In this document: in pieces, positions 3,070-52,312 of the stretch
Position numbering within the stretch: position 1 is the stretch's first letter
Layout: each line of letters opens with the position of its first letter
NCBI GenBank assembly: GCA_001643675.2
Contig: LSRY02000010.1
Coordinates: forward strand, 1,612,001-1,676,000
DNA from: Monocercomonoides exilis PA203
Lineage: Eukaryota > Protista > Preaxostyla
Direction: 5' to 3'
DNA: 64,000 nt
Program-made: the position numbers and the translations under genes
Notes under the pieces: model-generated
Seen by the model: only the letters and a program-made list of their open reading frames with translations
Told to the model about the DNA's origin: nothing
Database searches by the model: none

Positions 3070-3952
3070 TATTTGAAAAAGAATGGTTCACTTTTTCTAT
3101 TCTCCTTCGAATTGAATGAAGGAGTTATTTCTATTGGAAGACGATAAAAAATTTTTGATACATAATCAATTCTTGATCACACTTCTTTATCATCATTCTT
3201 GGCAAATGGAGAAGATCCTGGTACCTCATGATCAACTCCCTTAATTATTAACATTCTATTATTTATTCTTATTGTGCTTATTAGGTTTTAGGGTTTTGAA
3301 GAGTTAAACAATTTCATATTGGATAGTGTGATAGTTTAGGGTAAGCCTGGGTGACTTCAGACTTTTGACTTTGGAAAATTTGTTATTGACTGACTTTAAA
3401 AATGATTGAAGTCAAAAAACAGTTAAATTTTATTTAAATAATACATAAGTTTAACAGTTCATTTTTCATGCACTTTATAATTTCAAAATGAAAAAAAAAA
3501 TCAAGATTAAAAGAAAAAAAAAATTCTTATTGAATATATAATAATCTGAAAAAACTTTTTTAGAAAAAAAGCATCCGTTTATGGGTTTTGACCGGATCAG
3601 TTTTTTTTTGAAAATTGCCCAAGTCACAGACTGGTCGATCTTTTTTTGACTTTGAAAAATTTTCATGTCAAAACCCAACATGTTTGAATGTGAAAATCTT
3701 TTAAGTGAATTTCAGAATGCCTTGGTGGATAATCAAATAGTTCGTGCGTTTAATAACTAGCTTCGTTTGTTTTGATAATTGAAGCATGATTTTTTGTGTC
3801 GCTTAATCAGAAACTGGCTTTTGCAAGAAAAATGGAAGAATTGAACAATCACGGATGCTGTTTTCTAAAACTGGAGCAAGTGGGATCATATGAAAAAGGA
3901 GCAAGTGTGATGTTGCTAAATCTTTAATATTTTTTTGCTTTGATAATATTAG

Positions 3953-6711
3953 AAAAGTTTACAAGCACCCAAAGAAAAGTAATGAATATTTAACCAGAAT
4001 ATCTTTAGAGGTCATCAATAATCAAATATGGATTTCATTTTTTCCTTCTAACATTGATGGCTCTCCAACAAAAGAATATCATAAACAATATTTATGCCCA
4101 AATGTTCGTGGTAATCAAACATGTGGAACAAGTGGTCGTCGGAGTTACGTTGCAATAAGAAATCATCGTTGTTTTTTATTAGAAAATCGCATTATATTTT
4201 CTTTCAAAGAGAAGAAAGCTCTTCAAAAAATCGATCGCATAAGGGAGAGCAAAGAAAGAACACTGATTCAGAGCACATCCACCAATTTACAGACTTTATT
4301 TACGAAAATAATAAGCCATTGCAACATATCTTTCTTATCAGCGTCTTCAGAAGAATTTAATAATTTTATCACAGCCTTAATTCATTTATCTCAAATGAAT
4401 CCAGGACTGTCTCCGTCAAACATTTTCCCATTCCTTACAAGAAAGAAAATACGAAGAATGGTTATTGAGGACAGTGAATTTGCAAAACAGAAGCGTGATA
4501 CAGCACTGAGGGGAATGGGCGTATGCGTGATGATGGATTCAGGTGTTGTGGGAAATCAGAAGTGCACAGTTGTGACGATAGCTCCATTGGTACCAAATAC
4601 ATCATCAGTGTTTTGGAAAGCATATCCATGCTGCAATAATGCAAAGCAGTACAGAAAACTAGCTTGGACAGTAATTCGGGAACTGGCACTAATCAACGCG
4701 CATGTTCGATGTTTTTGTTCGGATGGCTTAAGTCCTCAAAAAAAAGCAATTGAAAATATTACAATTCCAATGGAAGATAATGAAAAATTACTAATAGAAA
4801 ATTTAAAGGCTGCTCCATTTTTCGTTTACTGTATGAATCATTTGTTGAATTTGGTTATTGTTCACGCGTTTTCTGAAATCCCTTTTCTGAAGAACCAGAA
4901 AACAATAATTACAGAATTTGCAAAAAATGCCCGCACTTCTTCTATGAAAAAATCCTTGAAACGGAAATGTCCGACATTTATTCAAACGAGATGGCTGTGC
5001 TTGTATTCTATTTGTTGCTTTATAAGAAAAAACAGAGAAAAGATATTTCACGAAAAATTATTACAATTCGATCAAATAAGAAACATTATAATCACAGAAC
5101 TTCTCCTTTTTCCAATTCAAAAATTACATTTGGAAATGGAAAATGAAAGAACAAAGATGGGAAATGTCTTTCCAAATGTGCTGAATGCATTCGGTTTGCT
5201 ATATGGAATCAAAAATCTTTCATTTATTAAAGAAACAGAATGGAAAAATGTTTTCGTTAATTTTATAATAATATTCCATAATTACATGTTAACCGGGAAC
5301 ACTGGTGAGTTAATATCATTATCGTATGTATTGTCTCCAACAGGACTTCAAAATTACATTCGAAATAAATTTTCAATTTCTTTTTTTGAAGCAGAAAAAT
5401 CTATTTCTTGTATGCCGTTGAATTCAGAGCCTAAGCAATTAATCTCATTACAACAATCCTCTTCAGCTTCGGAATATTCATCATTCACACGTTCACCTAT
5501 CATTTGCGCTTCAAATACTTCATCCAAACTTCCATCATCTTCGTCGTCAATTGAAACAAGCGTCAATCATCTAGATAAAGAAAAAAATATAACCATATCA
5601 AATTCAAGCAATGATTCAAAGCGACCGTTCAAGGATCAATTAAAAACAAATTCTTCCGATCATAATGAAAAAGATGTTTCAAATCATTCATCTCTAAGTC
5701 TTACGGAACAACAACATCAATCTGTTTGTTATTCTTTAACAAACGACTGTTTTTTGAAGCATTGAACCATGTGTCTGATGAACTTCATGAAATAAAGGAC
5801 AATTGCGTCCCGATGACAAAGTTGATAAGAAATGGAATCAAAGAAGATGAAAGTTATCAATCAATTGAAATTATCGAAGAAATTCACTGCATTATCAGCA
5901 CGGTGTCCAATTTCAAGCGTTCAGAATTTGAAACTATAGAAACTTCAAGAGAGGAAAGCAAAAGTGAAGAAAGCGAGACAGAGTCTAGTGAAGAGGACTT
6001 GTTTGGCTTATGCATGGCTGAAGATTGTTCAGAAGATGATGAATTTTTTATGTCCGAACCCTTCAAACAAAGCGAAAAGAAAAAAGATGAAACCATGAAT
6101 GAATCTTCTTCAATTCATTCAGCTGCTTCCTCCTGCTCTTCTTCTTCTGAAAGTTTTTCTTCAACATGCTTGACATCTTCTCAAACGCTTGTTTTCGAAG
6201 ATAATTCTCATGACTCACTTGAAGATTCAATGGAAGACGGAACAGATGAAATAGAATATGGGATAGATGATGTGGAGGTGCTGTTTTCAAACCAGAAGAT
6301 TAGTTTGATTTCCCGTCTGGAACCAGAAAAAGAGAAAGAAGTTTGTGATCAAGTGGTGTGTTCCATATCATCTTGCTGGGATACACGAATTAGACAAAGT
6401 TTTGAAAGATATATTACAACAGTTTTATCAAATCAATCGAAAGAAATCAGAGATATATGCTTCAAACTGTTTCTGGAATTTTTGAATGAAGCACCAAGCT
6501 TCATATATGAAGACGACATACAAAAGTTTTACGCAGAGATCACAAAGAAAGGACCTATTCAAACTATATACTCAAACATCTGTTTTTCATTAGTTTCGTC
6601 TCCATGCAGCGAAGCAAGCTGCGAACGTATTTTTCAAGAATGAAAAGGATCTCTGGTGACAGAAGGCATTCCCTATCATTAGAAGCTCTTAATGCTCTTT
6701 TAACTATTTAG
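3953..6711 (+). CDS. hAT transposase with two apparent 1-nt frameshifts; 5' exons possibly from ~3680
   Basis: Frame is open upstream of the 4395 ATG, with a BED-like W..C..C..H-x-C motif and NISFLSASSEEF. Catalytic motifs MMDSG (D1), FCSDG (D2), CMNH (CxxH), TRW, and SEASCERIF/SRMKRISGDRRHSLSLEAL (E plus hATC dimerization motif), ending at TAG 6709-6711. Confidence 0.88.
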
Positions 6712-8314
6712 CCTTTTGACAAAAGTGTTTTCATTTCACAATACTTTCAATAAATATAAAAAAAACAATAAATTATCTGTTTTCTTTTTTGATTTTCACA
6801 AAAATATCAATCAATATTTTCATGAATAAACAGCATATTTTAAGATCGTTCTTGTAAAGCGTTAATGTCAATGAGCAAATAAAAAGAAGAACATCTGAAT
6901 GAGGAAACTGAAAGCAATATTTGTGATGGAAGTAAACGATAAGGAGAATATGTGTTGCGTTTGTTGCTCTTTTCAATACAATCTCACTTCTTTTCTATGA
7001 ATATGTTCGAAGTCCTTTTATGGCTTTCAACATATCTTCTATGTCATGCATTCTGTCTTCCACACATCTTTGTGAATATCTTTTCACTTTCTGAATTCCG
7101 TTATTGTTTGTTGATTTTTCAATTTTATTTTAACTCTTCATTGATATTTCCAATTCTATAACAGCATCTTTTCCTTCTTCACCATCTTCTTCTTTTTAAC
7201 TTTCTTCTTCACCAACGGAGCTATTGTCCTTTCCCACACACATTCCACCGATTGTTGCTATGTTTCCCCTCATCCCACAGCCAGTCATCCATCTCGTTTC
7301 CTGCGATCAGCTGAGAGATTCCGTGCTGTTCACCATCGACGACTGCTTCTCTCTCAGCAAAGACGACCTGTCGCTTTTGAGGGCAGCACTCATCACGTCA
7401 GACATCATTCCCATTGGAATGAATGAAAGCACAACAACCGATGAAGAAGAAGATATTGAAGAAAAAGAAGAAATGAAACAACAGAATGACTCAAGTGAAA
7501 ATCGTCATCGCTATCATTATCATCGTCTTCTTCTTCATCTTTTTCCTCTTCCATTTTATTTCTTCTCAGTTAATCAGTCGAATTCCAAAGCGGTGCGTTT
7601 CAACTGCCTTTTGGATCGGTCGCGACACACTCGCTAAATGCAGCTCTGATCTGTCCAGCTGTGTCTCTTCTCTCTTCTTCAATGCTTCCACTCCAATTGA
7701 TGAGATTGTTCAAAACAGGAATTATAATGGATCTTCTCCTCTTTTCTTTTCCTCTTCGCCCTTTAGCATGTCTTCTTCTTTATCTTCTTCTGCTATTTCA
7801 AATCTGTCTCCTTCTATCTCCAATTATAATTCCAAATCTTCAGTCGCTTCTTCATCCTATTCGTCGGTAGTTGGCTCGCCTTGTGCTCATTCACATCTCT
7901 TTCCTGATGCTTTCCCACAAACATCCAGCTCTTCCACCTCCTCTTTCCATTCTTCTTCGTATTCCTCTTCGAATGTGTAATTTTCTCTGCCAAATTCTTT
8001 AGTTGCTCGCTTTCCTGTTGCTTTTTAACCTTTTTGCACTTGTCTTCTGTTGTGGTTTTAATCCGTTTGAGCACATTCAGCTGAGAGAGTGAATGAAGAA
8101 TGGAGAAATAGAGGCGAAGAAGGAGAAGCTGGAATGGACGATGCAGAGAGGGAAAGAGATAGAGAAAGAGAAGAAGAGGTCGAACATTCATTTGCCAATG
8201 AAAAGGATTGTGAAGATTGCACATGTTCCAATGAAGCAGACACAAACTCAAATAAGCATAAAAGTCATTCATTGTTCCATGTTGAAATAACAAGCTGCAG
8301 AACACCGAAGGTAG

Positions 8315-10985
8315 TTGAAAGAGATACAAAGCGGTTTTCAGAGTCATATGACAAGGACTAAGTTCCTCCTATCTCGTTTGAGTCTCCCTGGTAGCATTTC
8401 TCATTTTCTCGCTCTATTAAGCACATTCCGCATTTGGTGGCTAGCTCTCAACCAGCTTCATGTTCCTCTTCCTCCTCCTCCTCCTCCTCCTCTTTCTTCT
8501 TCTTCTTCTTCTTCTTCTTCTTCTTTGTCTTCTTCTTCTTCTTCTTTGTCTTCTTCTTCTTCTTCCTCTTCCTCTTCTTCTTTTGCTTCCACTGCAAAAC
8601 CTTCTTCTTCTCAAATCTCTTTGCGCACATCTCATTTCCAGGCAATCATCACCGCTGCCTCTGCCTCTCCCTATGCCGAGATCTGGGCCTTCCCCATCCT
8701 CCGCACTGTTTCCCTGTTGTGTGCCACTCTTCTCCAATCAGCCAACAGCCAGCAGCAGAACCTGCAGCTCCTCCACAGCAACACCCAAATCGTGCTGTCT
8801 TCTCTTTTGTCGTTCTTCGCCTCCTCTTCTCTCCCAACCTGCCGCGCTCCTTCTCTCTTTGCAGACTCCCTCCCTCTTTACACACTCGATTTCCCCCCTT
8901 CTCCTCTCTACCCTCCCTTCTCATCTGCCCAATGTGCTGTGCAGCTGACTAACATCATGTTCCTCTTCCCGACGGGAGTGCCTGTGCCGCCAATGCTCAA
9001 CCATCTGCGCAGCCGGCTTCTGCGCAGGTGTTGTGGAGAAGCAGAGATTGAGATGTTGCTGTGTGTTTTGCATCACAGCTTCACGAAAGCAGGCGAAGGG
9101 ATTGGAATTGCGAGATGTGTGGCTTCGTTGCTGTAGAATGGGAGGAGGAGGTTGGAAGGATGGGACGAGAGGTTTGATGGAGAAGAGGGGAGGAGAGTGA
9201 AGAAGGAGATGAGGAGGAGAAAGAGAAGGGAGGAAATGAAGGAAAAGAAAGAGAAGAAAGAAAAAGATGTTGATGGATGAATCAGATAGAAATTATGATG
9301 AAAAAGTTGAAGAAGCAAATGAGCAGACAAAAGAAGGAAGAAGAGAAGAAGGAGAAGAACAAAGAGAAGAAAACGAAGAAGATGATGAAACAGAATCAGA
9401 TTCTTATGCCTTCACCCAAATGAACCGCACACTTGTGTTCCAGTCAGATGCACAGATTGAGCGAGAGCGTCTGAAGATCAGCCAGCGGAAAGCGGAAGAA
9501 GAGGAGCAAGAAAGAGACAATCTGCTGTCTCTTCTGCAGGAAGAGGACAATGAGGCGATGTTAGACACACTCGAAGCATCGTTCCCTCATCTGCCGCGGC
9601 TGTACTGGCGAGCAGACATCTTCACGTTCCTCACAAACCGAATGGCGATGATACAGCCGTCTCAGCTGCAGTCGCTGGCGGCTTCGCTGGCAGAGGTTGA
9701 GTCCCTCACAGCTGCTCTTTCTGCGGCCTCTTCTTCTCTCCAATCGCTCGCCAGTGGAGCAGCAGGCAGAGGGAATGATGATGTGCAGAGAGAGGCGATC
9801 GAGCAGCTGAAGAGAGAGAGGGAGAAACTGGTGAAGGAGCAGCAGGCGCTGCAGACGAAGATGCAGAAGACGCCGCTGGAGAAGCTGATGAAGCCGCTTC
9901 CACTGCAGAACTGGCTTAGGTCTTCGCTCATTCTGAGGAAGCTGGCAGAGATTGTGAGGAAGCTGGCGATGCGGTTTGAGAAAGCTGGTTCGATGCAGAG
10001 CTTTGTTGACTCGCTGGTGAGGCATGTGGTGATGGAATTGCTGTCATCAGGGAAGTTTGTGGGGTGTTTGAAGGCGCATGCGAGGCAGACGAGGATGGGG
10101 TATTGGATGAAGAGGGAGATGAGCAAAGTGAATGGGAAGGACGAGGAAGGAGAGGAGTTTGGATGGGTTGATGATGAGGATGAAGAAGAGGTTGATAAAG
10201 AGGAGGAGGAGGAGGATGATGAAGAGAAAGCAGAGAAGGCGAGGAGAGAGAAAGAGAGGAAGGAAGAAGAGGAATGGGAAGAGGAAGAAATTGAGATTGA
10301 GGTGGAAGAAGAAGAAGCTACAGAAACAGAAGGAGGAGCAGAAGGAGCAGTGGAAGAAGTTAAAGATGAAAAGACAAAAGAAGGAGAAGGAGATGGAAAA
10401 GAAGGTGAAATAAAAGAAGGAGAAGCAAAAGAAAGAAAAGAAGGTGAAGAAGAAGAAAAAGAAAGCAAATTAGCATTGGACAAATCTCAGACAAATTCTG
10501 ATAAACCAAATGTGATGAAAGAAGGAGAAAAAGAAGGAGAAGCAGAAAAAGGAGAAGTCAAAGAGGGAGAAAAAGGAGAAAAAGAAGGAGAATCCACCGA
10601 TCACAATGCCTTAACAGTCAAGAGCTTAGCGCCAACAGATGCAGATGATGCAGATTTGTCAGTGATTTCGTCAGTTTCTGATCTTTCTGATGCAGAAAGT
10701 GAGATATCAGCTGAAGACAAGCAGCAGATGGAGATGCTGAAGGAGCTGGAGCAGCGATTGAGGGAGTTGAATGAGAAGAATGCGGCGATGCTGGAGGAGA
10801 AGAGGAAAGCGGAGGAAGAGATAGAGAAGGAGGTGGAGGTGGATGTGGATGGGGAGATGGAAGGAGAGAAAGAGAAAGAGGAAGAGGAAGAGGAAGGGAA
10901 GAAACAGAAAGAGAAAGAGAAGAAAGGGAAGAGCAAAAAGTTATCAAAAAGATTGTTCGGAGAAAGAAGAAGAATGCATCTTTGA
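8315..10985 (+). pseudogene. Cargo inside the hAT: host-like gene fragment(s) (ORFs 8315-9136 and 9267-10985), helical plus acidic
   Basis: Protein-like segments with poly-Ser and Glu-rich tracts like the host genes in this window. No clear start, no recognised domain. Confidence 0.5.
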
Positions 10986-11370
10986 GTGATAACATTGCAG
11001 AAGAAGGCAAAGAAAAAGAAGAAGAAGAGGAAGAAGAAGTTGATGGATGTGATGTTATTTTCACAGATGATTTCGATTTTGAGGGAGAATGTGAAAGAAG
11101 AGAAGTTTTATTTGAAAATTTCTTTGAAGAAGACAAGCCAGGAGAAGAAGAAGAAGAAGATGATGATGATGATATAGTTGTTGAGGATGAAGCCAATGAA
11201 GAAGAAGAAGACATAAGATTCAAACATAATGTTGAAGTTAGTGAAGTAGAAGAAGAAGTTGGCTCAACAGATGTTGCAAACGAAGCTGTTCTGTTTCTTG
11301 CTGTAGAGAAAGTGACAGCTTGTCCTTTGTGTCTGAAACGAGAAGAAGAAGAAGATAAAGAAGAGGGAGA

Positions 11371-11493
11371 GGAAGAAGAAGAAGAAGAAGAAGAAGAAGA
11401 AGAAGAAGAAGAAGAAGAAGAAGAAGAAGAAGAAGAAGAAGAAGAAGAAGGAGGAGGAGGAGGAGGAGGAGGAGGAGGAGGAGGAGGAGGAGA
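11371..11493. repeat. (GAA)n followed by (GGA)n trinucleotide microsatellite
   Basis: Direct reading. Confidence 0.9.
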
Positions 11494-13050
11494 ATAAGAA
11501 GAAGAAAATGAAAAAGAAGATAAAGAAGAGGGAGAGGAAGAAGAAGAAGAAGAAGAAGATTTAAATGAGAAGAAGAAGAAGAAGAAGAAGAAGATGATGA
11601 TGATGGTAAATGGATAGACCGAATTGATTAATTGTTGAAAATTGAGAAGATGAGTGTCAATTTATGTCAACGGAAAAATTCAATCGAATTTTCTTCTTCA
11701 GGTTTTTGTCTTTTGGAAAATAATAGCCTCTGAACCTTTTTCACTTTCAGCTCAATCCACTTTCTTTCTTTCCAACAAAAAATTGGAAATATAGAGCAAT
11801 TCCTTTTTCATTCCGTCTCTTTTTTTCGCTTCCCTTATTTCACAAAAAAATCATCTTTCCTCAAAAACTTATTCTTCTCCAAAGCACAATGCAAGCCATC
11901 TTCGATTTATCTTTAATTTCATCAATCCTCATTTCATTTTTCTTCCTTGCTTTTCTTCTTCATCTTCAAAGTCATCCTATCCTTCTCTCTTTCAGCATCC
12001 TGAATGAAAAATAAAAATCACTTCAAAAAAATAACCACAGTAAACCTTCTAAGCATTTTTTCAAGCAATTTTCTGTTTTTTATTCACTAGTCAATGCTTG
12101 TTTTCCTTTACAAAAAAATTCATTATGCCTTCGATTTTCAAGTGTTTCATCGTCTGATACTCAGTTTTCACTTCCAATCTTCTTTATCATGTGAACTTTC
12201 TTTATGAATTTGTAGAATAAACTCAATATTCTTGCAGATTAATAAGATATTCCACTTTTTGCTTATTTTCGAAAAGTTCCACAGGATTCCCCGAAAAAAG
12301 AGCATTTACAGATAATAGGCAAATACAACAATATGCAAACCAATTAGCTATCATTGACTGCAAGTTTGTAATTGCAAAAAGACATTCCTCAGAATAAGTA
12401 TTTCTTGAATTATGGTTCATAATATTTTCTTTCTTTTGTGAAAAAAAGAAATACATAATTAATTATTTCAAAAAACAGCCATACATTTTTATTCACTAAA
12501 AATTTGTGTTTATTGACTCAAAAATTTGAGAGAGATAAGAAAAAGCCAATTGACGTGAAAATATTCCACTGACTGACGTAACCATCAATTTTTCAATCCG
12601 TCAACCAGGCTTAGTTTAGGGTTTTACCGAGCAAATTTTTGGTTAGGGTTAGCCCTAGAAGAGATTTTCAAAATGAAAATGATATAAATAGTGGGTAGGA
12701 TCACCTTGGTACCATGATCTACTCCACTTGCCTCATTCTTCACAATTTCAACTTTTTTTTTAAAGTTCTTTTCTTTTCTTTTCTTATCATTTCTTTGTTA
12801 TCTTTTTTTCTTTTCATCTTTTTTTCAAGAATTAATAAATGGTTGGACAATGAGATGCAAAAGTTCCATATATCAAAAGGAATTGAAAAAAGATTGTCAT
12901 GAAAAATTAACAAAAGACATTAATCTTTTCTGAAAAAAGTTATATAATTATATTCTTAATAATTATCGAAAAACGAAAACTTGTGAAATTCAAGTTAAGC
13001 ATTGACTTAAATGCTTAATGATAGGTTCATTTTCTGTATTTGCTTCTCAG

Positions 13051-31992: not shown

Positions 31993-34289
31993 ATGTCATC
32001 TCTGTCATTAAGTTTGAAACATTATTTTATGACTGTGATTTATAAACTGTGTTTTTGTTAAAAGATTCGGTTTATGCACCTGGTCCAAACACAGAACGAG
32101 GAAAGCCAACTCGTTTGACACATAGCCCAAAAGGTGATGAAATCGTCTATGCCTCTGGAAATGTTATAGTCATTCGGAATGTTGCTGATCCAATGATTGC
32201 GGACATTTTCACAGGACATCGTGCAAAAACTACCGTGGGAAGAATCGCACCAAGTGGTTATTACTGTGCTTCAGCTGGTATAAAAATTATTTTCTTGATA
32301 TCTTTTATATTTTATAACTTTAATAAAATTTTACGTTTGTAGATTCTCAGGGAAATGTTATGGTCTGGGATTTGGTCAATAAAGTCGAACATATTGTGAA
32401 ATATCAGAAAAAGAGTTTCTCAAATGGTGTACTTGATCTCGATTGGACAGAAGATAGCAAACGTATTTGCGTTGTTGGAGATGGAAAAGACACGTTTGTA
32501 ATTCCTTATTTTTCGATTTTTGTCTTTTTTATAGAAATAATTTTCATTTTCTTTTTTCATTGATTATTATTTCAACATTGTTGAACAGCAAAGCAGAAGT
32601 TTGGATGTGGGATTCTGGTTCAAGTACAGGTGAGATATCTGGACACACAAGCAGAGTTCAGGGATGCGCAATAAAGCAAACTCGTCCATATCGTCTTGCA
32701 ACTTGTGGTGAAGATATGCTCACGAATTTTTATAAAGGTCCTCCATTCAGATTTGATCACTCGAACAGAGATAACACAAGATTTGTCAACACTGTTGAAT
32801 ATGCTCCAGATGGGTCGATCTTTGCAACAGGAGGAGGAGACAAAAAAATCTGCATCTATGATGGTGTTGAGGGAACAAAGAAGTGCGAGATGAGCAACGA
32901 AGATGAGCACAAATTATCAATCTTTTCAATTGGCTTTTCGTTGGATGGGAAATCGCTGCTGTCGTGCTCTGCAGATAAGACAGTGAAGCTGTGGGATGTT
33001 GAGACACAGAAGTGTGTGTCAACAATGAAGGCGAGAGAAACACCAGAGCTCTGCGACACGCCAGTTGGCTGCACATTCACCACGCTCGGTGCTGTTGTTG
33101 CCACTCTCCGTGGAGACCTGTGTGTGTATGATCCTCGTGTAACTGACGTGTTCACCCCAGTGAAGGTTATTCGCGGGCACAACAAGCCCATTCAAGGTTT
33201 GGATGTTGTGCATCGCCCAGCTGGCTCAAGCGAAGCATCGTCCTCAGCAACACCATCAGGCGAGTCGCACGAGGATGAATCTTCACATCGTGTGAACTTT
33301 GTGTCTGCGTCAATCGACGGGCAAGCACTTCAGTTTAACGAGCGTGCTGGATCACTTGCGGGAGAAGCTGGATACAAGCACGAAGGGCAGCCTTTGTGTG
33401 CTGTTGTTGCTACACCAACGACGATGGTGACACTCGGAATGGAAGGAAACATCGTGTTTTCGCAGACTGAAGAGGCGAAAGCAGCTGCTGCTGCAGAAGT
33501 GAAGCCTGTCAAGAAGCCATTTGAGATGCCCCAGTCACTTGCGCTTCTGTCTGAAGGTGAGTTTGTTGTTGCCGCTGCCCAGAGGAAGATTACAGTGTGG
33601 AAGTGCAGCACAAACGAGGCTGATGTTGCCGCTCCAATCTGCGAAGCCCCGACTGATTACAATGTGACATGCATGGCCTCACAGCTGAGCAAGAACATTT
33701 TTGCTGTTGGAGGATCAGACCAATTTGTACACTTCTGGAAGTTTGAAGCCGAAGAGAAGAAGATTGTTGAATATGGTTTGTTTTTTTTTATTATTATTAT
33801 TAAATATTAAATATTCGAATCTGATCATTTTGTTCAAAAAAATTGATTACAAATTTGCTCTTTCTGATATTCTCTATTTTTTATCATTTATTTTCATTTC
33901 AAATTTCAACAGCCAAATCAAAGGGCAAATACGCAGGTGCAGTTTCAGCAGTTGCTCTATCATCAGACGGTGCAATGTTTGCAGCAGCGCGCGACAGGTT
34001 CATTTGCATTGGAAAATTATGTGACACAGATGTGTCTGATCTGAATGAGCAGTTCCTTCTGCACACATCACGTGTGGCTGCTGTTGCCTTCTCACCTGAC
34101 AACACGAGGCTTCTGTCGGCTGGCCTTGACTGCCAGATATTTGTGTGGGATGTGAACGATCAGGAGAAGTTCATCAAGCAAGTTGGATGCCATGCTCCCC
34201 AGGGCATTTCTGGTGCTAAGTGGCTGAATAACACCTCTATTATTACAAGCGGTGCAGATGGCGTTATTAGAAAGTGGGTTGTTGCGTAA
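31993..34289 (+). CDS. WDR1: WD-repeat actin-interacting protein 1 (WDR1/AIP1), about 6 exons
   Basis: YAPGPNTERGKP, IFTGH..TTVGRIAPSGYYCASA, DLDWTEDSKRICVVGDG, WDSGSSTGEISGH, KQTRPYRLATCGED, FYKGPPFRF are AIP1 signature sequences. Confidence 0.93.
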
Positions 34290-46036: not shown

Positions 46037-46346
46037 AAGAATTACACTGAAATAGCTCATTTCGTAATAGTATGCTCTTGTTTGAATTAAATTGTTTTTA
46101 CATTTATCTATATTTTTTTTTTCTTTTTTTTCATTAGAAGGAACGGATAAATGATACCTTTTCGAGACAGAAAAAATAAAAGATGATAAATCTTTCTGAG
46201 TTTCTTTTTTGAAAAATTTTTATGTTTAGTTTTATGTTTTAACGAAGCAAAATTTCTGATGATTGCATATTATCTTTTTACGATATTTTTTAAAAAAAAA
46301 AAAGATTGCAAAAAAATAAAAAGTCTTCATGATAAATGTATATTTT

Positions 46347-46740
46347 GGCAATATTTAAGAAAGGTGGGCAAAATTGATCTGACCCAGTATAATTATATTT
46401 TTAGGGTTAAAATTCAAAAATAATCTCAGTATTAATTGCTTGGTTTAGGTTGTAGGGTTAGCGTAACAGTTCTTGGGCTTAGGGTTTTGTTCCCGCTCTT
46501 CTTTTTAGGGTTTGCGCTCGAAAAAAGTGGTTTATTTTGTGATCAAATTTTAGGGTTAGGGTTTTATTATAAATATTTGTTTAAGAAAAGTATAGAAAAA
46601 TAGAGCACTCTAGCCGATCGGCACCAGCGACTTGCTAACAAACTTGCAAGTTGGTGAGTCGAAGGTTCGAACCCGGAGGGGTGCTCTTTTTTGCCATTTT
46701 TTAAATAAAAATTTTTTGCCCACCTTTCTTAAATCATGCC
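46347..46740. mobile_element. 394-bp GG-terminal MITE (Merlin/MULE-like) with TTAGGG motifs and a tRNA-like unit
   Basis: TIR ggcaatatttaagaaaggtgggcaaaa (46347-46373) matches the reverse complement of 46714-46740 at 25/27. 8-bp TSD tatatttt at 46339-46346 and 46741-46748. Confidence 0.9.
46603..46692 (+). ncRNA. tRNA-like RNA polymerase III unit (non-canonical or tRNA-derived)
   Basis: Terminal stem gagcactc/ggggtgctc, A-box tagccgatcgg (46611-46621), B-box ggttcgaacc (46664-46673), T6 terminator (46687-46692). The T-stem and anticodon arm are non-canonical. Confidence 0.65.
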
Positions 46741-47156
46741 TATATTTTTTGTAATTTTTCATTTTCGGTCAAAACAAACGGTTATAGAATGATAATTCTA
46801 ATTTGTTAGAATTTAAGGACTTTCAATTTTCATTGGATGATGTTGTTTTTTCAGATATTTTCATCCATTGATTGAACGATTGTTCAGCTATCTGATTTGA
46901 TTTATAAGATGAATTGCACAATTTTTGTGTTATTTTGAAATTTTTGTAAAATTTTGAAATTAGTATATGTTATTTTGAAATAACCCAATAATTTTGAAAT
47001 TTTTTTTTATTTCACAATTCATCTATTAATATTCTTATATTACCTAAAATGAATGAAGTTTTTAAAATTTTTGCTCTTCAGTCAATCTTGATTATCGAAA
47101 GAAAATTGTAAAGAATATGTGTTAAACTGAAATATGAACTTTTTTTAATTTTTTTA

Positions 47157-48640: not shown

Positions 48641-50100
48641 CTATGCCCGCTCCTTCTTGGGATATCTCTGAGGGGACATTGGCCCGGTCGTTACCCCCTC
48701 AGTGTTATCCCCTATCTGTGCTATACTTCTTCCACTGTGCTTCCTCCGGTCTTTCCCTCTCTTCTTCAGCGGCGTTGGATCCTTCTCTCCTGTCAGCTCA
48801 CAAATATTACTGGGGATAATGGAGGGTGTCTTCTGAGGACTCGGTTGTCGAGGTGTTGAGCTTCGTGAATGAGTTGTTTCACTTCTCCTTTCTTCTCCAC
48901 TCTGCAGATTCATTCTTCCCCTTGATCGCTTTCTCGTGAGTTTCTTTCTGATTCCGAATCCCGCTTTGGGTAATTCATTAGCTCGATCTTTCATCTCCGT
49001 TTCTGATATCTCTAGCGTCCCTTCCTTCATATCTCCCATCTTATCTATCTTATAATCTTCTCCCCTCTGGGATACTGATCCACCGATCGTCTCCAGAATC
49101 CAATTTGTGTCTTGTACCGGTAACACGGTATAATATTCCTGGCCCACTCTCGAACCCGGAGCCCATCTCGCGTAAGCATTGATCGCCTTCCAGTCTGCTC
49201 CCTCTTGTCTTGCTAAGTGTGTGATCACTGCGTGTCTTATGGAGTATGCGGTGAAAGATTCGGGAATTTCGTTCTCTCTCAGAATAGCTGTTAGTTCTTC
49301 TTTAATCTTCTGCAAGCTTGCAGGTTGCATTTCCTTGATATCGAACCACACATGTTCGCTCTTAAAGGTCGTCTTCGTATAGTCCATCCAGTGTTGGAGA
49401 GCCTCAACTGCATCGATACGTGGGTTGGGGTGTTTCCGTATTATAACTTTGATAATCTCACCTCCCGACGTCTTGGTTCGTACCTGTGTTTGGATAGAGT
49501 TATCTTTAAATGTTGTTGTCTCTCTTCTCATTCTTTCCAGCTCTGCTGGCCTTAGGGCACCAAAGATCATAGTGAGAATGAGGGCTCTCCTCTGGAGAGT
49601 CCGAATATCTTTAGAGTCGTAGGTGCTCTCAGCCCATCTTGTGATAATTGTCAAGTCCCACATTGATTTGTATCGTTTTCCCCTTCTTGGCTTATCCCCC
49701 ACATAAGTCTTTAGAAATATTTCTATGTCCTTTCGATCGATCTTGGTCTCTCTAAAAAGATTGATGGACTCCAGTACTTTAAGGACTGTCTGATAAATCA
49801 CTCCACTTGAGAGGTTTGTATTCGAGAGTGTTTCGATGAACTCTGCCATAATCCACTTCGCATCTTTTGTTGTGAGGGGGTCAGTGTCGTCCATGCTCTC
49901 TCTATCAAGGAATTGTTTAAATCTTCGCAGCGCTCTCCACGTATCTCTTTCGCTCTTTTGACTTCTAAGTATTGCTGCTGCTATCTCCCTTGCTCCAACG
50001 TATTCTCCCCATGTTAAGAAGAGGTCTCTTCCTTGTATATTCTCTTGCCCAGTGTGACGGCTATCACCTCTCCTGGGGGTAGTTTCCAGCCTTCCCTTCT
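48641..50100 (-). CDS. DIRS tyrosine recombinase (distal part of ORF 48641-52312; true start uncertain)
   Basis: FGALRPAEL (R), VRTKT (K), YSIRH (HxxR variant), RWAPGSRVGQEYY (W and catalytic Y). Confidence 0.88.
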
Positions 50101-52312
50101 CATCTTCGCTCCCGGTATCATGCACTCCTGAAAGGTCCCCAGTGTCTCTATCGAATGCCCAGGCTGCAGTAACGGGGTCCAGGTCTGCCCCCGCCAGGCT
50201 GGCAGAATCAGAATCGTTAGTTCCCTCTGGGCTTCCTTCATCTTCTCTTTCAAGGTTCGTCCAATGTTTCTCAGGAACGGGTGGACTAGCACTATGTCGT
50301 CTTCTGGTGTTCCTCTCTCTCTCTTCCTTCTCCCGGAGGATAGTCTCCAAGTACTCCCGCAGGGCACCGGCGCAATCTGATCTAAAGTTGTATCTAGTAT
50401 TCTCGGTACGATTGTTTGTAATATCTCTGCGACTTTCTCCCCCCTCAGTGCATAGTCCGGCTTTCTCGCCATCCGGCTGAGTGCATCCGCTTCCGTGTTC
50501 TGTTCTCCCGGGAGGTGTTCCGTTTGAATTGTGATGTCCAGGCTGTTCAGTTTCTTCTCCAATGCTCTCAGTGTTGGAATGAGCGATGGCGCTCCTCTCT
50601 TCTTCTGGATTGTCCATCTCGCGGACATGTTGTCTGTCTTCAGACGAATATGGTCTATTTTCTGTTCTTTCAGCCATGCTCCTTTCCTTTCCAAAGTCCT
50701 CAACACTGCTCTGGACTCCTTCTCGTTTATCGCTAACGCGCTCTCCTGGAGGGTCCAACTCCCGTGAACATATATCTTCTCCTCTTTGTTCTCTGTTGAT
50801 ATTGTTAATACTGCACCCCATCCCAGCTCTGATGCGTCCGTTGTAAGTTCTGCTGGTCTGTTCCTTCTCCTCAGACTCCTTGGCCTGTTCTCTAGCAGGG
50901 TTTTTCTCCAATGTGTTAATTCTCCCAACATCATTGAGTTGACTATCACCGTTCCATTCCAGCCAACCACGGGCTATCTCCTGCCTCAGCATGTATTGCA
51001 TTCGCCTCATCTGCAAGCTTGCTGGTGGGTGTTGCAGTCTCACAAAATTCAGCCTCCCGAGGAGTGCTGCTAAGTCTCTTGTTCTGTGATTCCTCCCTTT
51101 CTTTGCATGTGCTATCCATTTTCGCACATCCTCCAGGAGCAGCACTCTCTTCCTTTCTTGGAGTGTCACTTCCATCTTCTCTGAGTTCCACAGCCATCCC
51201 AAAAACTCTACGCTCCTTGCGGGTTCTAGCTTCAGCTTCTCCTCCGACAGTATCCAGCCCAGATTTCTCAGGAACTGGGCTATCTCCTGTGAGATCGATC
51301 TCAAGGCATCCCTGTCTGGATGCATAAGGAGAATATCGTCCAGATATATCACCAGCTTTCCCTTCCACTGTTCTCTGATATGTGACGCTGCCCGTCTCAT
51401 TATCTTCGTGAATACTCTGGGCGCGTCCTTTGCTCCAAATGGCATCCCCACGTACGCGTAGCAGTGATCTTGAAAGCTGAAGCACAGATAGGGACTGAAT
51501 TGCTCGTCCACTTTGACATGTTGATAAGCACTCGATATGTCGAGGGTGGTCATCCAATCGTTCTCCTCCAGGAGTTCCACAACTGTCTCCTGGGAGTCCA
51601 TCTTGAAATGCTTTCCCTGCACTTCCTCGTTCAGAGCTCTGCAATCCAGTATCTTCCTCCACTTTCCGTTTTTCTTTCTCACCATGAATGTCGGATTGAA
51701 CCACTTCGCCTCTGACTCCTGTATAGGCTTCACAACTCCGTCCTTCAGTTCCCCCTCCAAGAGGGATAAATAATTGTTCGTCATCTCTATCATCCCCCGA
51801 AACTCTTGTCTGTGTTTTCTCTCCTTAAGTGAGATTGGGGAATGGGGACTTTTCCATCGAGCTCTTATACCACGGCTTACTAGTTTGTCTTCCCCAATCT
51901 TCTTCCACTCGCTCAGCCTGTTCACCAGTCTCCCCGGAAGTGGCTCCCTCGGTGGTCCAATCACTATACTCTCCCTCACTCCTGGCGTCTTGTGGCCAAG
52001 TTGCGTCTGTGTATTCCCTTCTTCTTCGAGAGTATCTAATATAGCTGTCCTCGAGCTCCCCTCCCGGGCGCTCACAATTGGGGGCTCTATAACAATCCCA
52101 AAAGTTTTCAAGACACTCTTCTCGTTCCTCCTCTCGCTCGTCTGTTCCTTCACTCGGGGATATGCGGAGTCTCCTTCTGTTTTCGTTGTATCGTGTAGCA
52201 CCTCTTCTCTCGCTCTCTCCCTCAAACGATCCCGTGCGGTTTCTCGTTCTCTCTCCTTCTCTTGGTCTAACCTGCTCACCACTTTTCCGATATTCACGTA
52301 TTGTTTCTGCAT
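50014..52312 (-). CDS. DIRS reverse transcriptase-RNase H plus degenerate methyltransferase-like tail; frameshift near 50972
   Basis: RT: KKNGKWRKILDCR, LDISSAY, MPFG..APRVFTK, YLDD, FLG. RNase H in ORF 50014-50970: TDASELGWG, INEKE, KTDN, NTEADALSR. Confidence 0.92.

Follow-up and report, generated by a model that had tools for sequence, protein, structure and literature searches.

A Merlin-type miniature transposon of Monocercomonoides exilis with a tRNA-derived cassette that most likely loads RNA polymerase III factors

Internal RNA polymerase III (Pol III) promoters are a hallmark of short interspersed nuclear elements (SINEs), which are retroposons. What, then, is a tRNA-like unit doing inside an element bounded by terminal inverted repeats (TIRs) and a target-site duplication (TSD)? 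The question is raised by positions 46347-46740 of a 64,000-nucleotide stretch of the Monocercomonoides exilis PA203 genome (contig LSRY02000010.1, forward strand; C2:1612001-1676000 of the assembly searched), referred to here as the window. An earlier note, made from the letters of the window alone, had recognized the element and proposed that it spreads a small RNA gene or TFIIIC site together with telomere-protein binding sites, as a portable chromatin boundary. The explanation favored here, and held to be probable, is that of a non-autonomous Merlin miniature inverted-repeat transposable element (MITE), designated subfamily A, that has been active recently and is composed of a filler module rich in the octamer TTAGGGTT and a tRNA-derived cassette that most likely loads Pol III factors.

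A reading of the sequence from 46200 to 46900 together with a repeat scan confirmed the element much as it had been first described. It spans 394 bp, and its 27-nt TIRs pair at 25 of 27 positions: the left TIR (46347-46373, + strand) is GGCAATATTTAAGAAAGGTGGGCAAAA, and the right is the reverse complement of 46714-46740 (- strand). The two start GGCAATATT... and GGCATGATT..., so that both begin 5'-GG, as Merlin termini do, and the left TIR, which starts 5'-GGCA, is conserved in nine copies. A direct 8-bp repeat, TATATTTT, flanks the element identically at 46339-46346 and 46741-46748. None of the window's open reading frames (ORFs) of at least 200 amino acids, the length class listed, overlaps the 394 bp. 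The element is thus short, non-coding, multi-copy and equipped with TIRs and TSDs, which are the properties of a MITE; its multiple copies and the clean 8-bp TSDs of other copies mean that it is not a chance inverted repeat.

The tRNA-like unit occupies the right part of the element, at 46603-46686 (+ strand), and its length is 84 nt, where about 85 had been estimated. Type-2 Pol III genes have an internal A box (TRGCNNANNGG) and, 30-60 nt downstream, a B box (GGTTCGANNCC), followed by an oligo-T terminator. All of these parts are present: the A-box-like TAGCCGATCGG at 46611-46621 fits its consensus, the B box GGTTCGAACCC at 46664-46674 matches perfectly, and a terminator-like T6 run at 46687-46692, kept in eight of nine copies, follows directly 3' of the 7-bp closing stem (GAGCACT/GGTGCTC). 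A long central hairpin lies between the boxes. Upstream, an A/T-rich linker at 46565-46602 separates the unit from the left module; it is here that other transposons end in other copies, as set out below.

A search of the 82.3-Mb assembly (101 contigs) recovered six intact, full-length A copies of 85-100% identity. Because three of these six have perfect 8-bp TSDs of differing sequence (among them GAAAAATC and TTTTATTT), the element must have moved by cut-and-paste, as the earlier note had surmised from the TIRs and the TSD, and the likeness of at least 97% among four A copies indicates that the movement was recent. Three further A copies are split by nested elements (loci L086, L087 and L088), so that the locus is far from single-copy; nine copies in the genome carry the A unit, to which are added three left halves of subfamily A that end at the edge of the unit (L008, L010, L018). 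A sister subfamily, B, is larger (~409 bp), has the TIR GGCATATTCACAGAGAACGGGGCAG (17 left and 17 right matches genome-wide) and shows a perfect or near-perfect 8-bp TSD in seven of the eight copies examined. From position 28 to about 216, the TTAGGGTT-rich module of ~190 bp, the A consensus is ~90% identical to that of B, whereas the TIRs of the two agree at only 14 of 24 positions and their right halves cannot be aligned. Two B copies (G000:C30:603818-604224 and 610247-610653; L012, L013) lie 6 kb apart in inverted orientation with identical flanks, and to judge from the sequence the pair is a segmental inverted duplication rather than two insertions.

Despite its unalignable right half, B carries a unit in the equivalent place and orientation, with an acceptor-like stem GCTTTGG/CCAAAGC, an A-box-like TAGCGCAAGCGG, the B box GGTTCGACTCC and a T7 run. 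In A, in B and in a transposase-coding relative of B described below, the B box has in fact been kept in perfect form, together with a closing stem and a T-run, although the A and B units are otherwise not alignable. Every one of the nine genomic matches to the A unit lies within a subfamily-A copy, at one fixed position and devoid of its own TSD or tail; no stand-alone copy occurs in 82 Mb, and matches to the B unit are nearly all within B-type elements. The unit is therefore an integral part of every family member examined, and the possibility that other members lack it does not arise. Compared with 15 tRNA species of the genome, the units resemble tRNA-Lys(ctt) in the T-arm (15 of 17 positions for A, 18 of 21 for B), which is ~3 standard deviations above the shuffle mean for A (one shuffle of which scored higher) and ~5 above for B. 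The likeness to real tRNAs is confined to the variable-loop/T-arm region, and no homology between the A and B units is established beyond GTTGGT...GGTTCGA. "tRNA-derived" is a reasonable description on this basis, whatever the isotype of origin.

The evidence that speaks most directly to the behavior of the unit comes from other transposons. Every interrupted A or B copy was inspected, and seven nested insertions were mapped with both host halves; six of the seven fall between about -12 and +5 of the first base of the unit. In A copy C37, a 970-bp TIR element with AGAACTTGATTG... termini and an AAT 3-bp duplication (termed X) lies 4-5 nt upstream of the unit, and in A copy C38 a pogo-like element (DDE_1) lies 7 nt upstream. 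A PIF/Harbinger element (DDE_Tnp_4) is found ~10 nt upstream in B copies C43 and C19; because it occupies the identical site in both, the composite probably moved as one. Another pogo-like element is inserted at +5 of the unit start in B copy C41, a 5.3-kb unclassified element (Y) is 1 nt upstream in B copy C91, and an X-like element is at B positions 245-247 in copy C13. The sole mapped insertion away from the unit is that of Z, a hAT-like element, at A positions 143-149 in copy C34. If insertions were even along ~400 bp, the chance of finding six of seven in a 28-nt window would be ~1e-6. Three more left halves (C45, C1 and C80), counted as junctions only as their right halves were not found, stop at that same point against pogo-like or Y sequence. 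The outer, host elements keep their own 8-bp TSDs.

The same inserting elements are found in front of genuine tRNA genes. Among 33 tRNA loci originally gathered for another purpose, the end of Y stands 7-9 nt in front of tRNA-Lys(ctt) and tRNA-Arg(acg), and that of X 7-12 nt in front of tRNA-Gln(ttg) and of two tRNA-Arg(acg) genes, with AAT at the junction again; pogo-like elements end 4 and 7 nt upstream of tRNA-Thr(cgt) and tRNA-Gln(ctg), respectively. For tRNA-Gln(ctg), an uninterrupted paralogue (L062) shows the empty site. The flanks of the targeted tRNA genes are unrelated, and only the downstream gene is common to them. Three inserting types are thus found at equal distance upstream of real tRNA genes, and X and Y are also in the same orientation.

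Some features of the inserting families, and of the tRNA genes themselves, may be recorded here. The Harbinger family has a DDE_Tnp_4 ORF, AGAACTT... termini and at least eight copies (L082:734-3895 corresponds to G000:C43:467533-470694); X, the insert at L088, is a 970-bp MITE-like Harbinger relative, and Harbinger or X sequences lie upstream of tRNA genes at L050, L051, L057 and L058. The pogo-like elements have TIRs AGTCGGGGAGTTAACCC... or AGTGGGGGACTAAATCC... (L084:779-4077, L087:751-2379, L047:806-1496, L063 about 1390-2620), and a 690-bp pogo-like derivative is among the elements 4-7 nt upstream of tRNA genes. The core of Y is GC-rich and C-skewed, and the element ends in ...GGGTATTTGACACGCT (L085:651-5988, L025:1750-3192); it is upstream of tRNA genes at L043, L044 and L056. 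Eight Y frames and one Z frame gave no credible Pfam match (one was weak, E 0.08). Nested in turn within one Harbinger copy (L082:793-1048) is a ~255-bp palindromic MITE that matches itself on both strands and occurs at ~40 other genome sites. Upstream of uninterrupted tRNA genes (L031-L063), an A-run around -25 to -18 is followed by a T-rich stretch around -12 to -6, and CAA or GAA is often present at -3 to -1. This pattern may be an upstream promoter element for Pol III, and the Merlin-borne units match it only loosely.

Retrotransposons that seek tRNA genes offer a guide to these insertions. Insertion of Ty1 falls when the B box is mutated, and TRE5-A requires an intact B box (PMC5911963, PMC5006619); Ty3 requires loaded TFIIIC/TFIIIB and ignores the so-called ETC sites, which bind TFIIIC only (PMC5911963). 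Because tRNA-seeking transposons insert at equal distance upstream of the unit and of tRNA genes, the unit would appear to be recognized by the Pol III machinery, and the simplest reading, which we infer by analogy, is that a Pol III initiation complex forms in vivo on the Merlin-borne unit. Since Ty3 passes over TFIIIC-only sites, the heavy targeting seen here would point to a full TFIIIB-type complex rather than to a bare ETC site. Of the earlier suggestion that a cassette spreads a small RNA or a TFIIIC site, the DNA-transposon cassette itself is borne out, and a TFIIIC/TFIIIB site is suggested by the clustering of nested insertions at its 5' edge.

To which transposons does the element belong? 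The answer came largely from subfamily B. A 1,508-bp B-type element at C10:32740-34247, known from the coordinates of four independent searches only, has its parts in order on one strand: the B left TIR (32740-32763), the subterminal motif TTGATCTGACCCA (32767), a DDE_Tnp_IS1595 match (PF12762, 86.7 bits, 33224-33604) in a stop-free frame of 359 amino acids, the B unit (34093-34207) and a perfect B right TIR (34223-34247). By these coordinates it would be a Merlin element with both a transposase frame and, beside the right TIR, the tRNA-like unit. A second, broken copy of 3,028 bp (C21:313025-316052), likewise known from coordinates only, has ~1.5 kb extra between transposase and unit. Merlin is supported as the correct superfamily by this B copy, the GG termini and the 8-bp TSDs. 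Monocercomonoides sp. PA203 has been reported to contain at least seven Merlin families with TIRs of 23-29 bp and 8-bp TSDs, in a description in which neither "tRNA" nor "MITE" occurs (PMC8101967). Where the earlier note had left a choice between Merlin/IS1016 and Mutator-like elements (MULEs), the transposase domain between B TIRs favors the former, and the constant 8-bp TSD and the Merlin nature of the related coding copy speak against the latter.

An autonomous partner such as the earlier note had sought would accordingly exist for B, and none was found for A: genome TIR-frame matches and the transposase profile, which marked roughly 575 candidate Merlin transposase loci, yielded no transposase-coding copy with A-type TIRs, every A-TIR site being a MITE. 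Subfamily A must, to go by these searches, either be cross-mobilized or have lost its own partner. Other candidates were tried and rejected. A DDE_Tnp_4 gene lies within two B copies (L082, L083), but Harbinger is not the partner because the 2.9-kb element occurs at no fewer than six other places with no flanking B termini and because it has its own AGAACTT... termini and 3-bp duplication. The hAT TIR of the window, TAAGCCTGGGTGAC, is unrelated to GGCA..., which removes hAT as a partner; membership of the MITE itself in hAT or Mutator was also rejected, as its TIRs are unlike those of the window hAT and its constant 8-bp TSD differs from the 9-11 bp usual for MULEs. A third TIR class, GGCACCGTGCAAGACAGTGGGGCA (G000:C1:2435702, C14:518350 and C40:233324), has the same GGCA...GGGCA frame as A and B and presumably belongs to another Merlin lineage.

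The left module of the element (46366-46564, + strand; element positions 20-218) fits into this relationship. Many genome matches cover element positions 20-218 only, and these belong to subfamily B. The subterminal motif TTGATCTGACCCAGTAT (46374-46390, +), found at 69 genome sites as against 0-1 for a control, is common to A, B and the module-only copies; its sites include C10:32767 and C21:316009, both of which adjoin Merlin transposase matches. The coding B element has the first 13 nt of the motif; once 13 nt past the TIR its sequence parts from the module, to which no match was reported at that locus. In the MITEs, therefore, the module most probably takes the place of the transposase region. 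A fragment of it (positions 27-185, lacking the Merlin TIRs) is also embedded in a different repeat of ~285 bp bounded by AAATTTGAGATCATC inverted repeats (L062:1401-1683 and 3635-3917, L061, L064-L068), two of which, on C56, face each other 2.1 kb apart with identical flanks.

In the scheme that results, A, B and the 1.5-kb coding relative of B would each carry a tRNA-derived, type-2 Pol III cassette beside the right TIR. The cassette would no longer code for a tRNA, would most likely still load TFIIIC/TFIIIB in vivo and would probably be transcribed into an RNA of ~85-90 nt, and the TTAGGGTT-rich left part would be a filler module, occupying the place of the transposase gene, that MITE subfamilies have exchanged. 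That the transposon gains anything from the cassette would be a further step. A bolder version, for which we see perhaps one chance among several, holds that in an oxymonad clade of Merlin a working Pol III unit is maintained as a functional organ of these transposons, through divergence and in both autonomous and miniature forms. The unit might then hold the right end in open, insulated chromatin, or supply a structured small RNA for transposition or for evasion of silencing; the TTAGGGTT sites may recruit a telomere-repeat-binding factor; and the elements would seed dozens of landing pads for tRNA-seeking transposons, which ride along as in C43 and C19.

The TTAGGG motifs call for separate consideration. 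The five exact copies seen at the outset are confirmed, at 46401, 46479, 46505, 46550 and 46556; every one is on the + strand, the - strand having none, and an exact-motif search found each to be the octamer TTAGGGTT (46401-46408, 46479-46486, 46505-46512 and the tandem TTAGGGTTAGGGTT at 46550-46563, which comprises the fourth and fifth and marks the end of the region common to A and B). A near-motif, GTAGGGTT, lies at 46453-46460, and B has TTAGGGTT at the corresponding place. Eight octamers occur in the 64-kb window where 1.1 are expected, a count reached in none of 100 shuffles, and all eight are inside two GGCA-ended MITEs; 92 kb of unrelated loci hold only five, scattered. The second MITE is a 252-bp element (window 3201-3341 and 12622-12732, TSD TCATTCTT) with three TTAGGGTT motifs, and its homology to the A/B module is not significant beyond the motif itself. 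This MITE is split by a hAT element of ~9.3 kb (3342-12613, TIR TAAGCCTGGGTGAC), the target GTTTAGGG being duplicated. Between the A and B consensus sequences, one difference is found in ~48 motif positions, against ~10% elsewhere. Among five older A copies, by comparison, the hexamers have accumulated 0.207 changes per site per copy and the rest of the module 0.122, and these copies keep only 0-2 of the five motifs; the faster decay of the hexamers argues that there is no host-level constraint on them. To the question of whether other copies keep both boxes and motifs, the answer is that the unit is integral to A, that the B box is mutated in some copies (C9, C38 and C34 among them) and that older A copies have lost most of the TTAGGG. 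The motifs thus stand as an unexplained, non-random feature. Any role, and this is speculation, would have to be one that serves the transposon itself, such as that of binding sites favoring mobilization.

One form of such a role is that TTAGGGTT provides subterminal binding sites for the Merlin transposase, or for a Myb-type host factor that is exploited, and so raises the mobility of the MITEs, which would account for its presence in unrelated Merlin MITEs. This is an addition to the favored explanation and not an exclusion of it, and we consider it rather unlikely as it stands. The motif occurs in two Merlin-type MITE families that have no other homology, its positions are retained between A and B, and a decay that sets in only after insertion would be expected under selection acting on the element. 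Yet typical subterminal repeats are not confined, as these motifs are, to one side and a single strand; statistically, the retention between A and B is not compelling; and the coding B copy probably does not have the module.

The case for a Pol III-binding cassette is not without difficulties, and several observations weigh against it. The unit falls below every tRNA detection threshold applied: ARAGORN at default or bacterial settings made no tRNA call, with or without introns, the default run having covered the window and 27 loci, and Rfam (RF00005) gave no tRNA match for the A or the B unit at E up to 10. Relaxed ARAGORN produced only contradictory, low-stringency calls. Its minimum-energy fold is a rod-like hairpin and not a cloverleaf, and the consensus folds of seven A and ten B copies are also rods, closed by a ~10-bp stem. 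The covariation analysis that the earlier note had called for, on those seven A and ten B units as aligned, gave no support for structural constraint after insertion: compensatory pairs number 0 in A and 2 in B, many pairs are broken, and the stems are broken in old copies, so that the unit evidently drifts once inserted. With A and B units of no established homology over most of their length, the wholly different acceptor stems of the two are not counted as covariation. RNA contigs from two metatranscriptome runs of one study cover 46138-46267 only, outside the element, although such libraries capture small Pol III RNAs poorly and contig coverage does not bear on them. The inserting transposons could recognize the DNA of the box sequences directly. 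Finally, no coding partner of A itself was found, and its membership in Merlin rests on its termini, its TSD length and its kinship with B.

Much of this would be expected if the unit were no more than the inert remnant of a tRNA gene that a Merlin ancestor had captured on one occasion, and bound no Pol III factors, with the clustering of insertions due only to preferred TA or TAA/AAT sites offered by the A/T-rich linker. The negative tRNA detectors, the loss of stem pairing without compensation in old copies and the RNA contigs that do not cover the element all agree with such a relic; and, where junctions were read by eye, the pogo-like (DDE_1) elements seem to use TA, and X and the Harbinger type AAT and TAA. 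We nonetheless consider it unlikely. Equally A/T-rich parts of the element hold one of the seven mapped insertions, four unrelated element types share one 20-nt window, and three types sit likewise upstream of tRNA genes of different isotypes with unrelated flanks. A, B and the coding copy, moreover, all retain the perfect B box, the closing stem and the T-run.

The portable chromatin boundary first proposed, by which TTAGGG-protein sites and a TFIIIC site would be spread together and used by the host, fares much worse and is very unlikely. It is true that long TTAGGG arrays at contig ends identify this as the genuine telomere repeat of the genome, that five same-strand TTAGGGTT in 394 bp are far above chance, that the otherwise unrelated 252-bp GGCA-ended MITE of the window has three, and that the A and B consensus sequences have their motifs at the same places. 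The element contains no interstitial telomeric array, however, its five hexamers being dispersed save for one tandem pair, and the coding relative departs from the module soon after its TIR; it is the hexamers that decay faster than the module around them, and the telomere-protein part of the proposal was not borne out. Lastly, a reading of the unit as a genuine (intron-containing) tRNA gene, or else as a SINE inserted separately into the MITE, is effectively refuted: it can point to the B box, closing stem and T-run and to an intron-containing tRNA-Val(aac) that ARAGORN proposed for the A unit at 80% stringency with introns allowed, against which stand the negative results of default ARAGORN and Rfam, the absence of a free-standing unit and of any TSD or tail of its own, the fixed position in A and the equivalent position in B and in its autonomous element.

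Comparison with known systems places the Merlin MITE and its cassette among several familiar themes. The 5'-GG termini, TIRs of ~24-29 nt, 8-bp TSDs and the DDE_Tnp_IS1595 frame of the sister subfamily are those of Merlin elements (IS1016/IS1595-related); the Merlin families of Monocercomonoides were described without MITEs or a tRNA-like unit (PMC8101967), and A differs also in that no transposase copy of its own was found. With tRNA-derived SINEs the unit shares an internal, tRNA-derived promoter of A and B boxes followed by a terminator, and a decayed tRNA function. SINEs, though, spread by retroposition, lack TIRs, and have variable TSDs and a LINE-matched (long interspersed element) or A-rich tail, whereas the A unit lies within a TIR element with a fixed 8-bp TSD and is never alone; it does not qualify as a SINE. 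Dada elements, too, are DNA transposons tied to small Pol III genes or to those for small nuclear RNA (snRNA) (PMC3706591, PMC8869645). A Dada element lands inside a tRNA or snRNA gene, whose halves flank it; here, in contrast, an entire tRNA-like unit is the cargo and the element is of Merlin type. Pack-MULEs and other Pack-type elements likewise capture a host-derived segment between TIRs and amplify it, but the present cargo is a Pol III promoter unit instead of gene fragments, is found in an autonomous relative as well and has been retained in distinct lineages. The tDNA and ETC boundary elements of yeast are comparable in that a B box outside a functional tRNA gene could bind TFIIIC; the avoidance of TFIIIC-only ETC sites by Ty3 (PMC5911963) sets them apart from the heavily targeted units described here.

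The nested elements find their closest parallel in Ty1 and Ty3 of yeast and in TRE5-A and DGLT-A of Dictyostelium, whose insertions fall within a narrow stretch upstream of Pol III genes (PMC5911963, PMC5006619, PMC6101501), and it is because of this resemblance to tRNA-gene-targeting retrotransposons that they can serve as reporters of a Pol III complex. They differ in that no fewer than two of the present families consist of DNA transposons (PIF/Harbinger with DDE_Tnp_4, pogo-like with DDE_1) and in that they insert only 4-12 nt upstream. A full-text literature search of partial coverage turned up no account of a DNA transposon that harbors a tRNA-derived Pol III unit internally, nor of Harbinger- or pogo-type elements that target the immediate upstream region of tRNA genes; in the literature so searched, targeting upstream of tRNA genes is known for retrotransposons and, in different form, for Dada. 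It is important to emphasize what such arrangements would mean. A cut-and-paste lineage that carries and retains a Pol III unit blurs the division between SINEs and DNA transposons, and the nested insertions offer a naturally occurring genetic assay for the formation of Pol III complexes in a species for which there are almost no molecular tools. They also reveal that PIF/Harbinger-type and pogo-like DNA transposons target the few nucleotides in front of tRNA genes. Should the unit be active, a new Pol III site would be seeded at every transposition, with possible effects on local chromatin and on the accumulation of other transposons.

The surroundings of the element within the window include two further features. 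The metatranscriptome contigs match 46138-46267 perfectly. Upstream of 46138 they give way to unrelated sequence, as would be seen at a splice junction, and they terminate near 46263-46267, shortly ahead of an A-run, where a + strand transcript probably has its 3' end, ~80 bp from the MITE. On the other side, at 48641-52312 (- strand), is an ORF of 1,223 amino acids with RVT_1 and Phage_integrase domains, which by this domain content is a DIRS-like retroelement, 1.9 kb downstream of the MITE.

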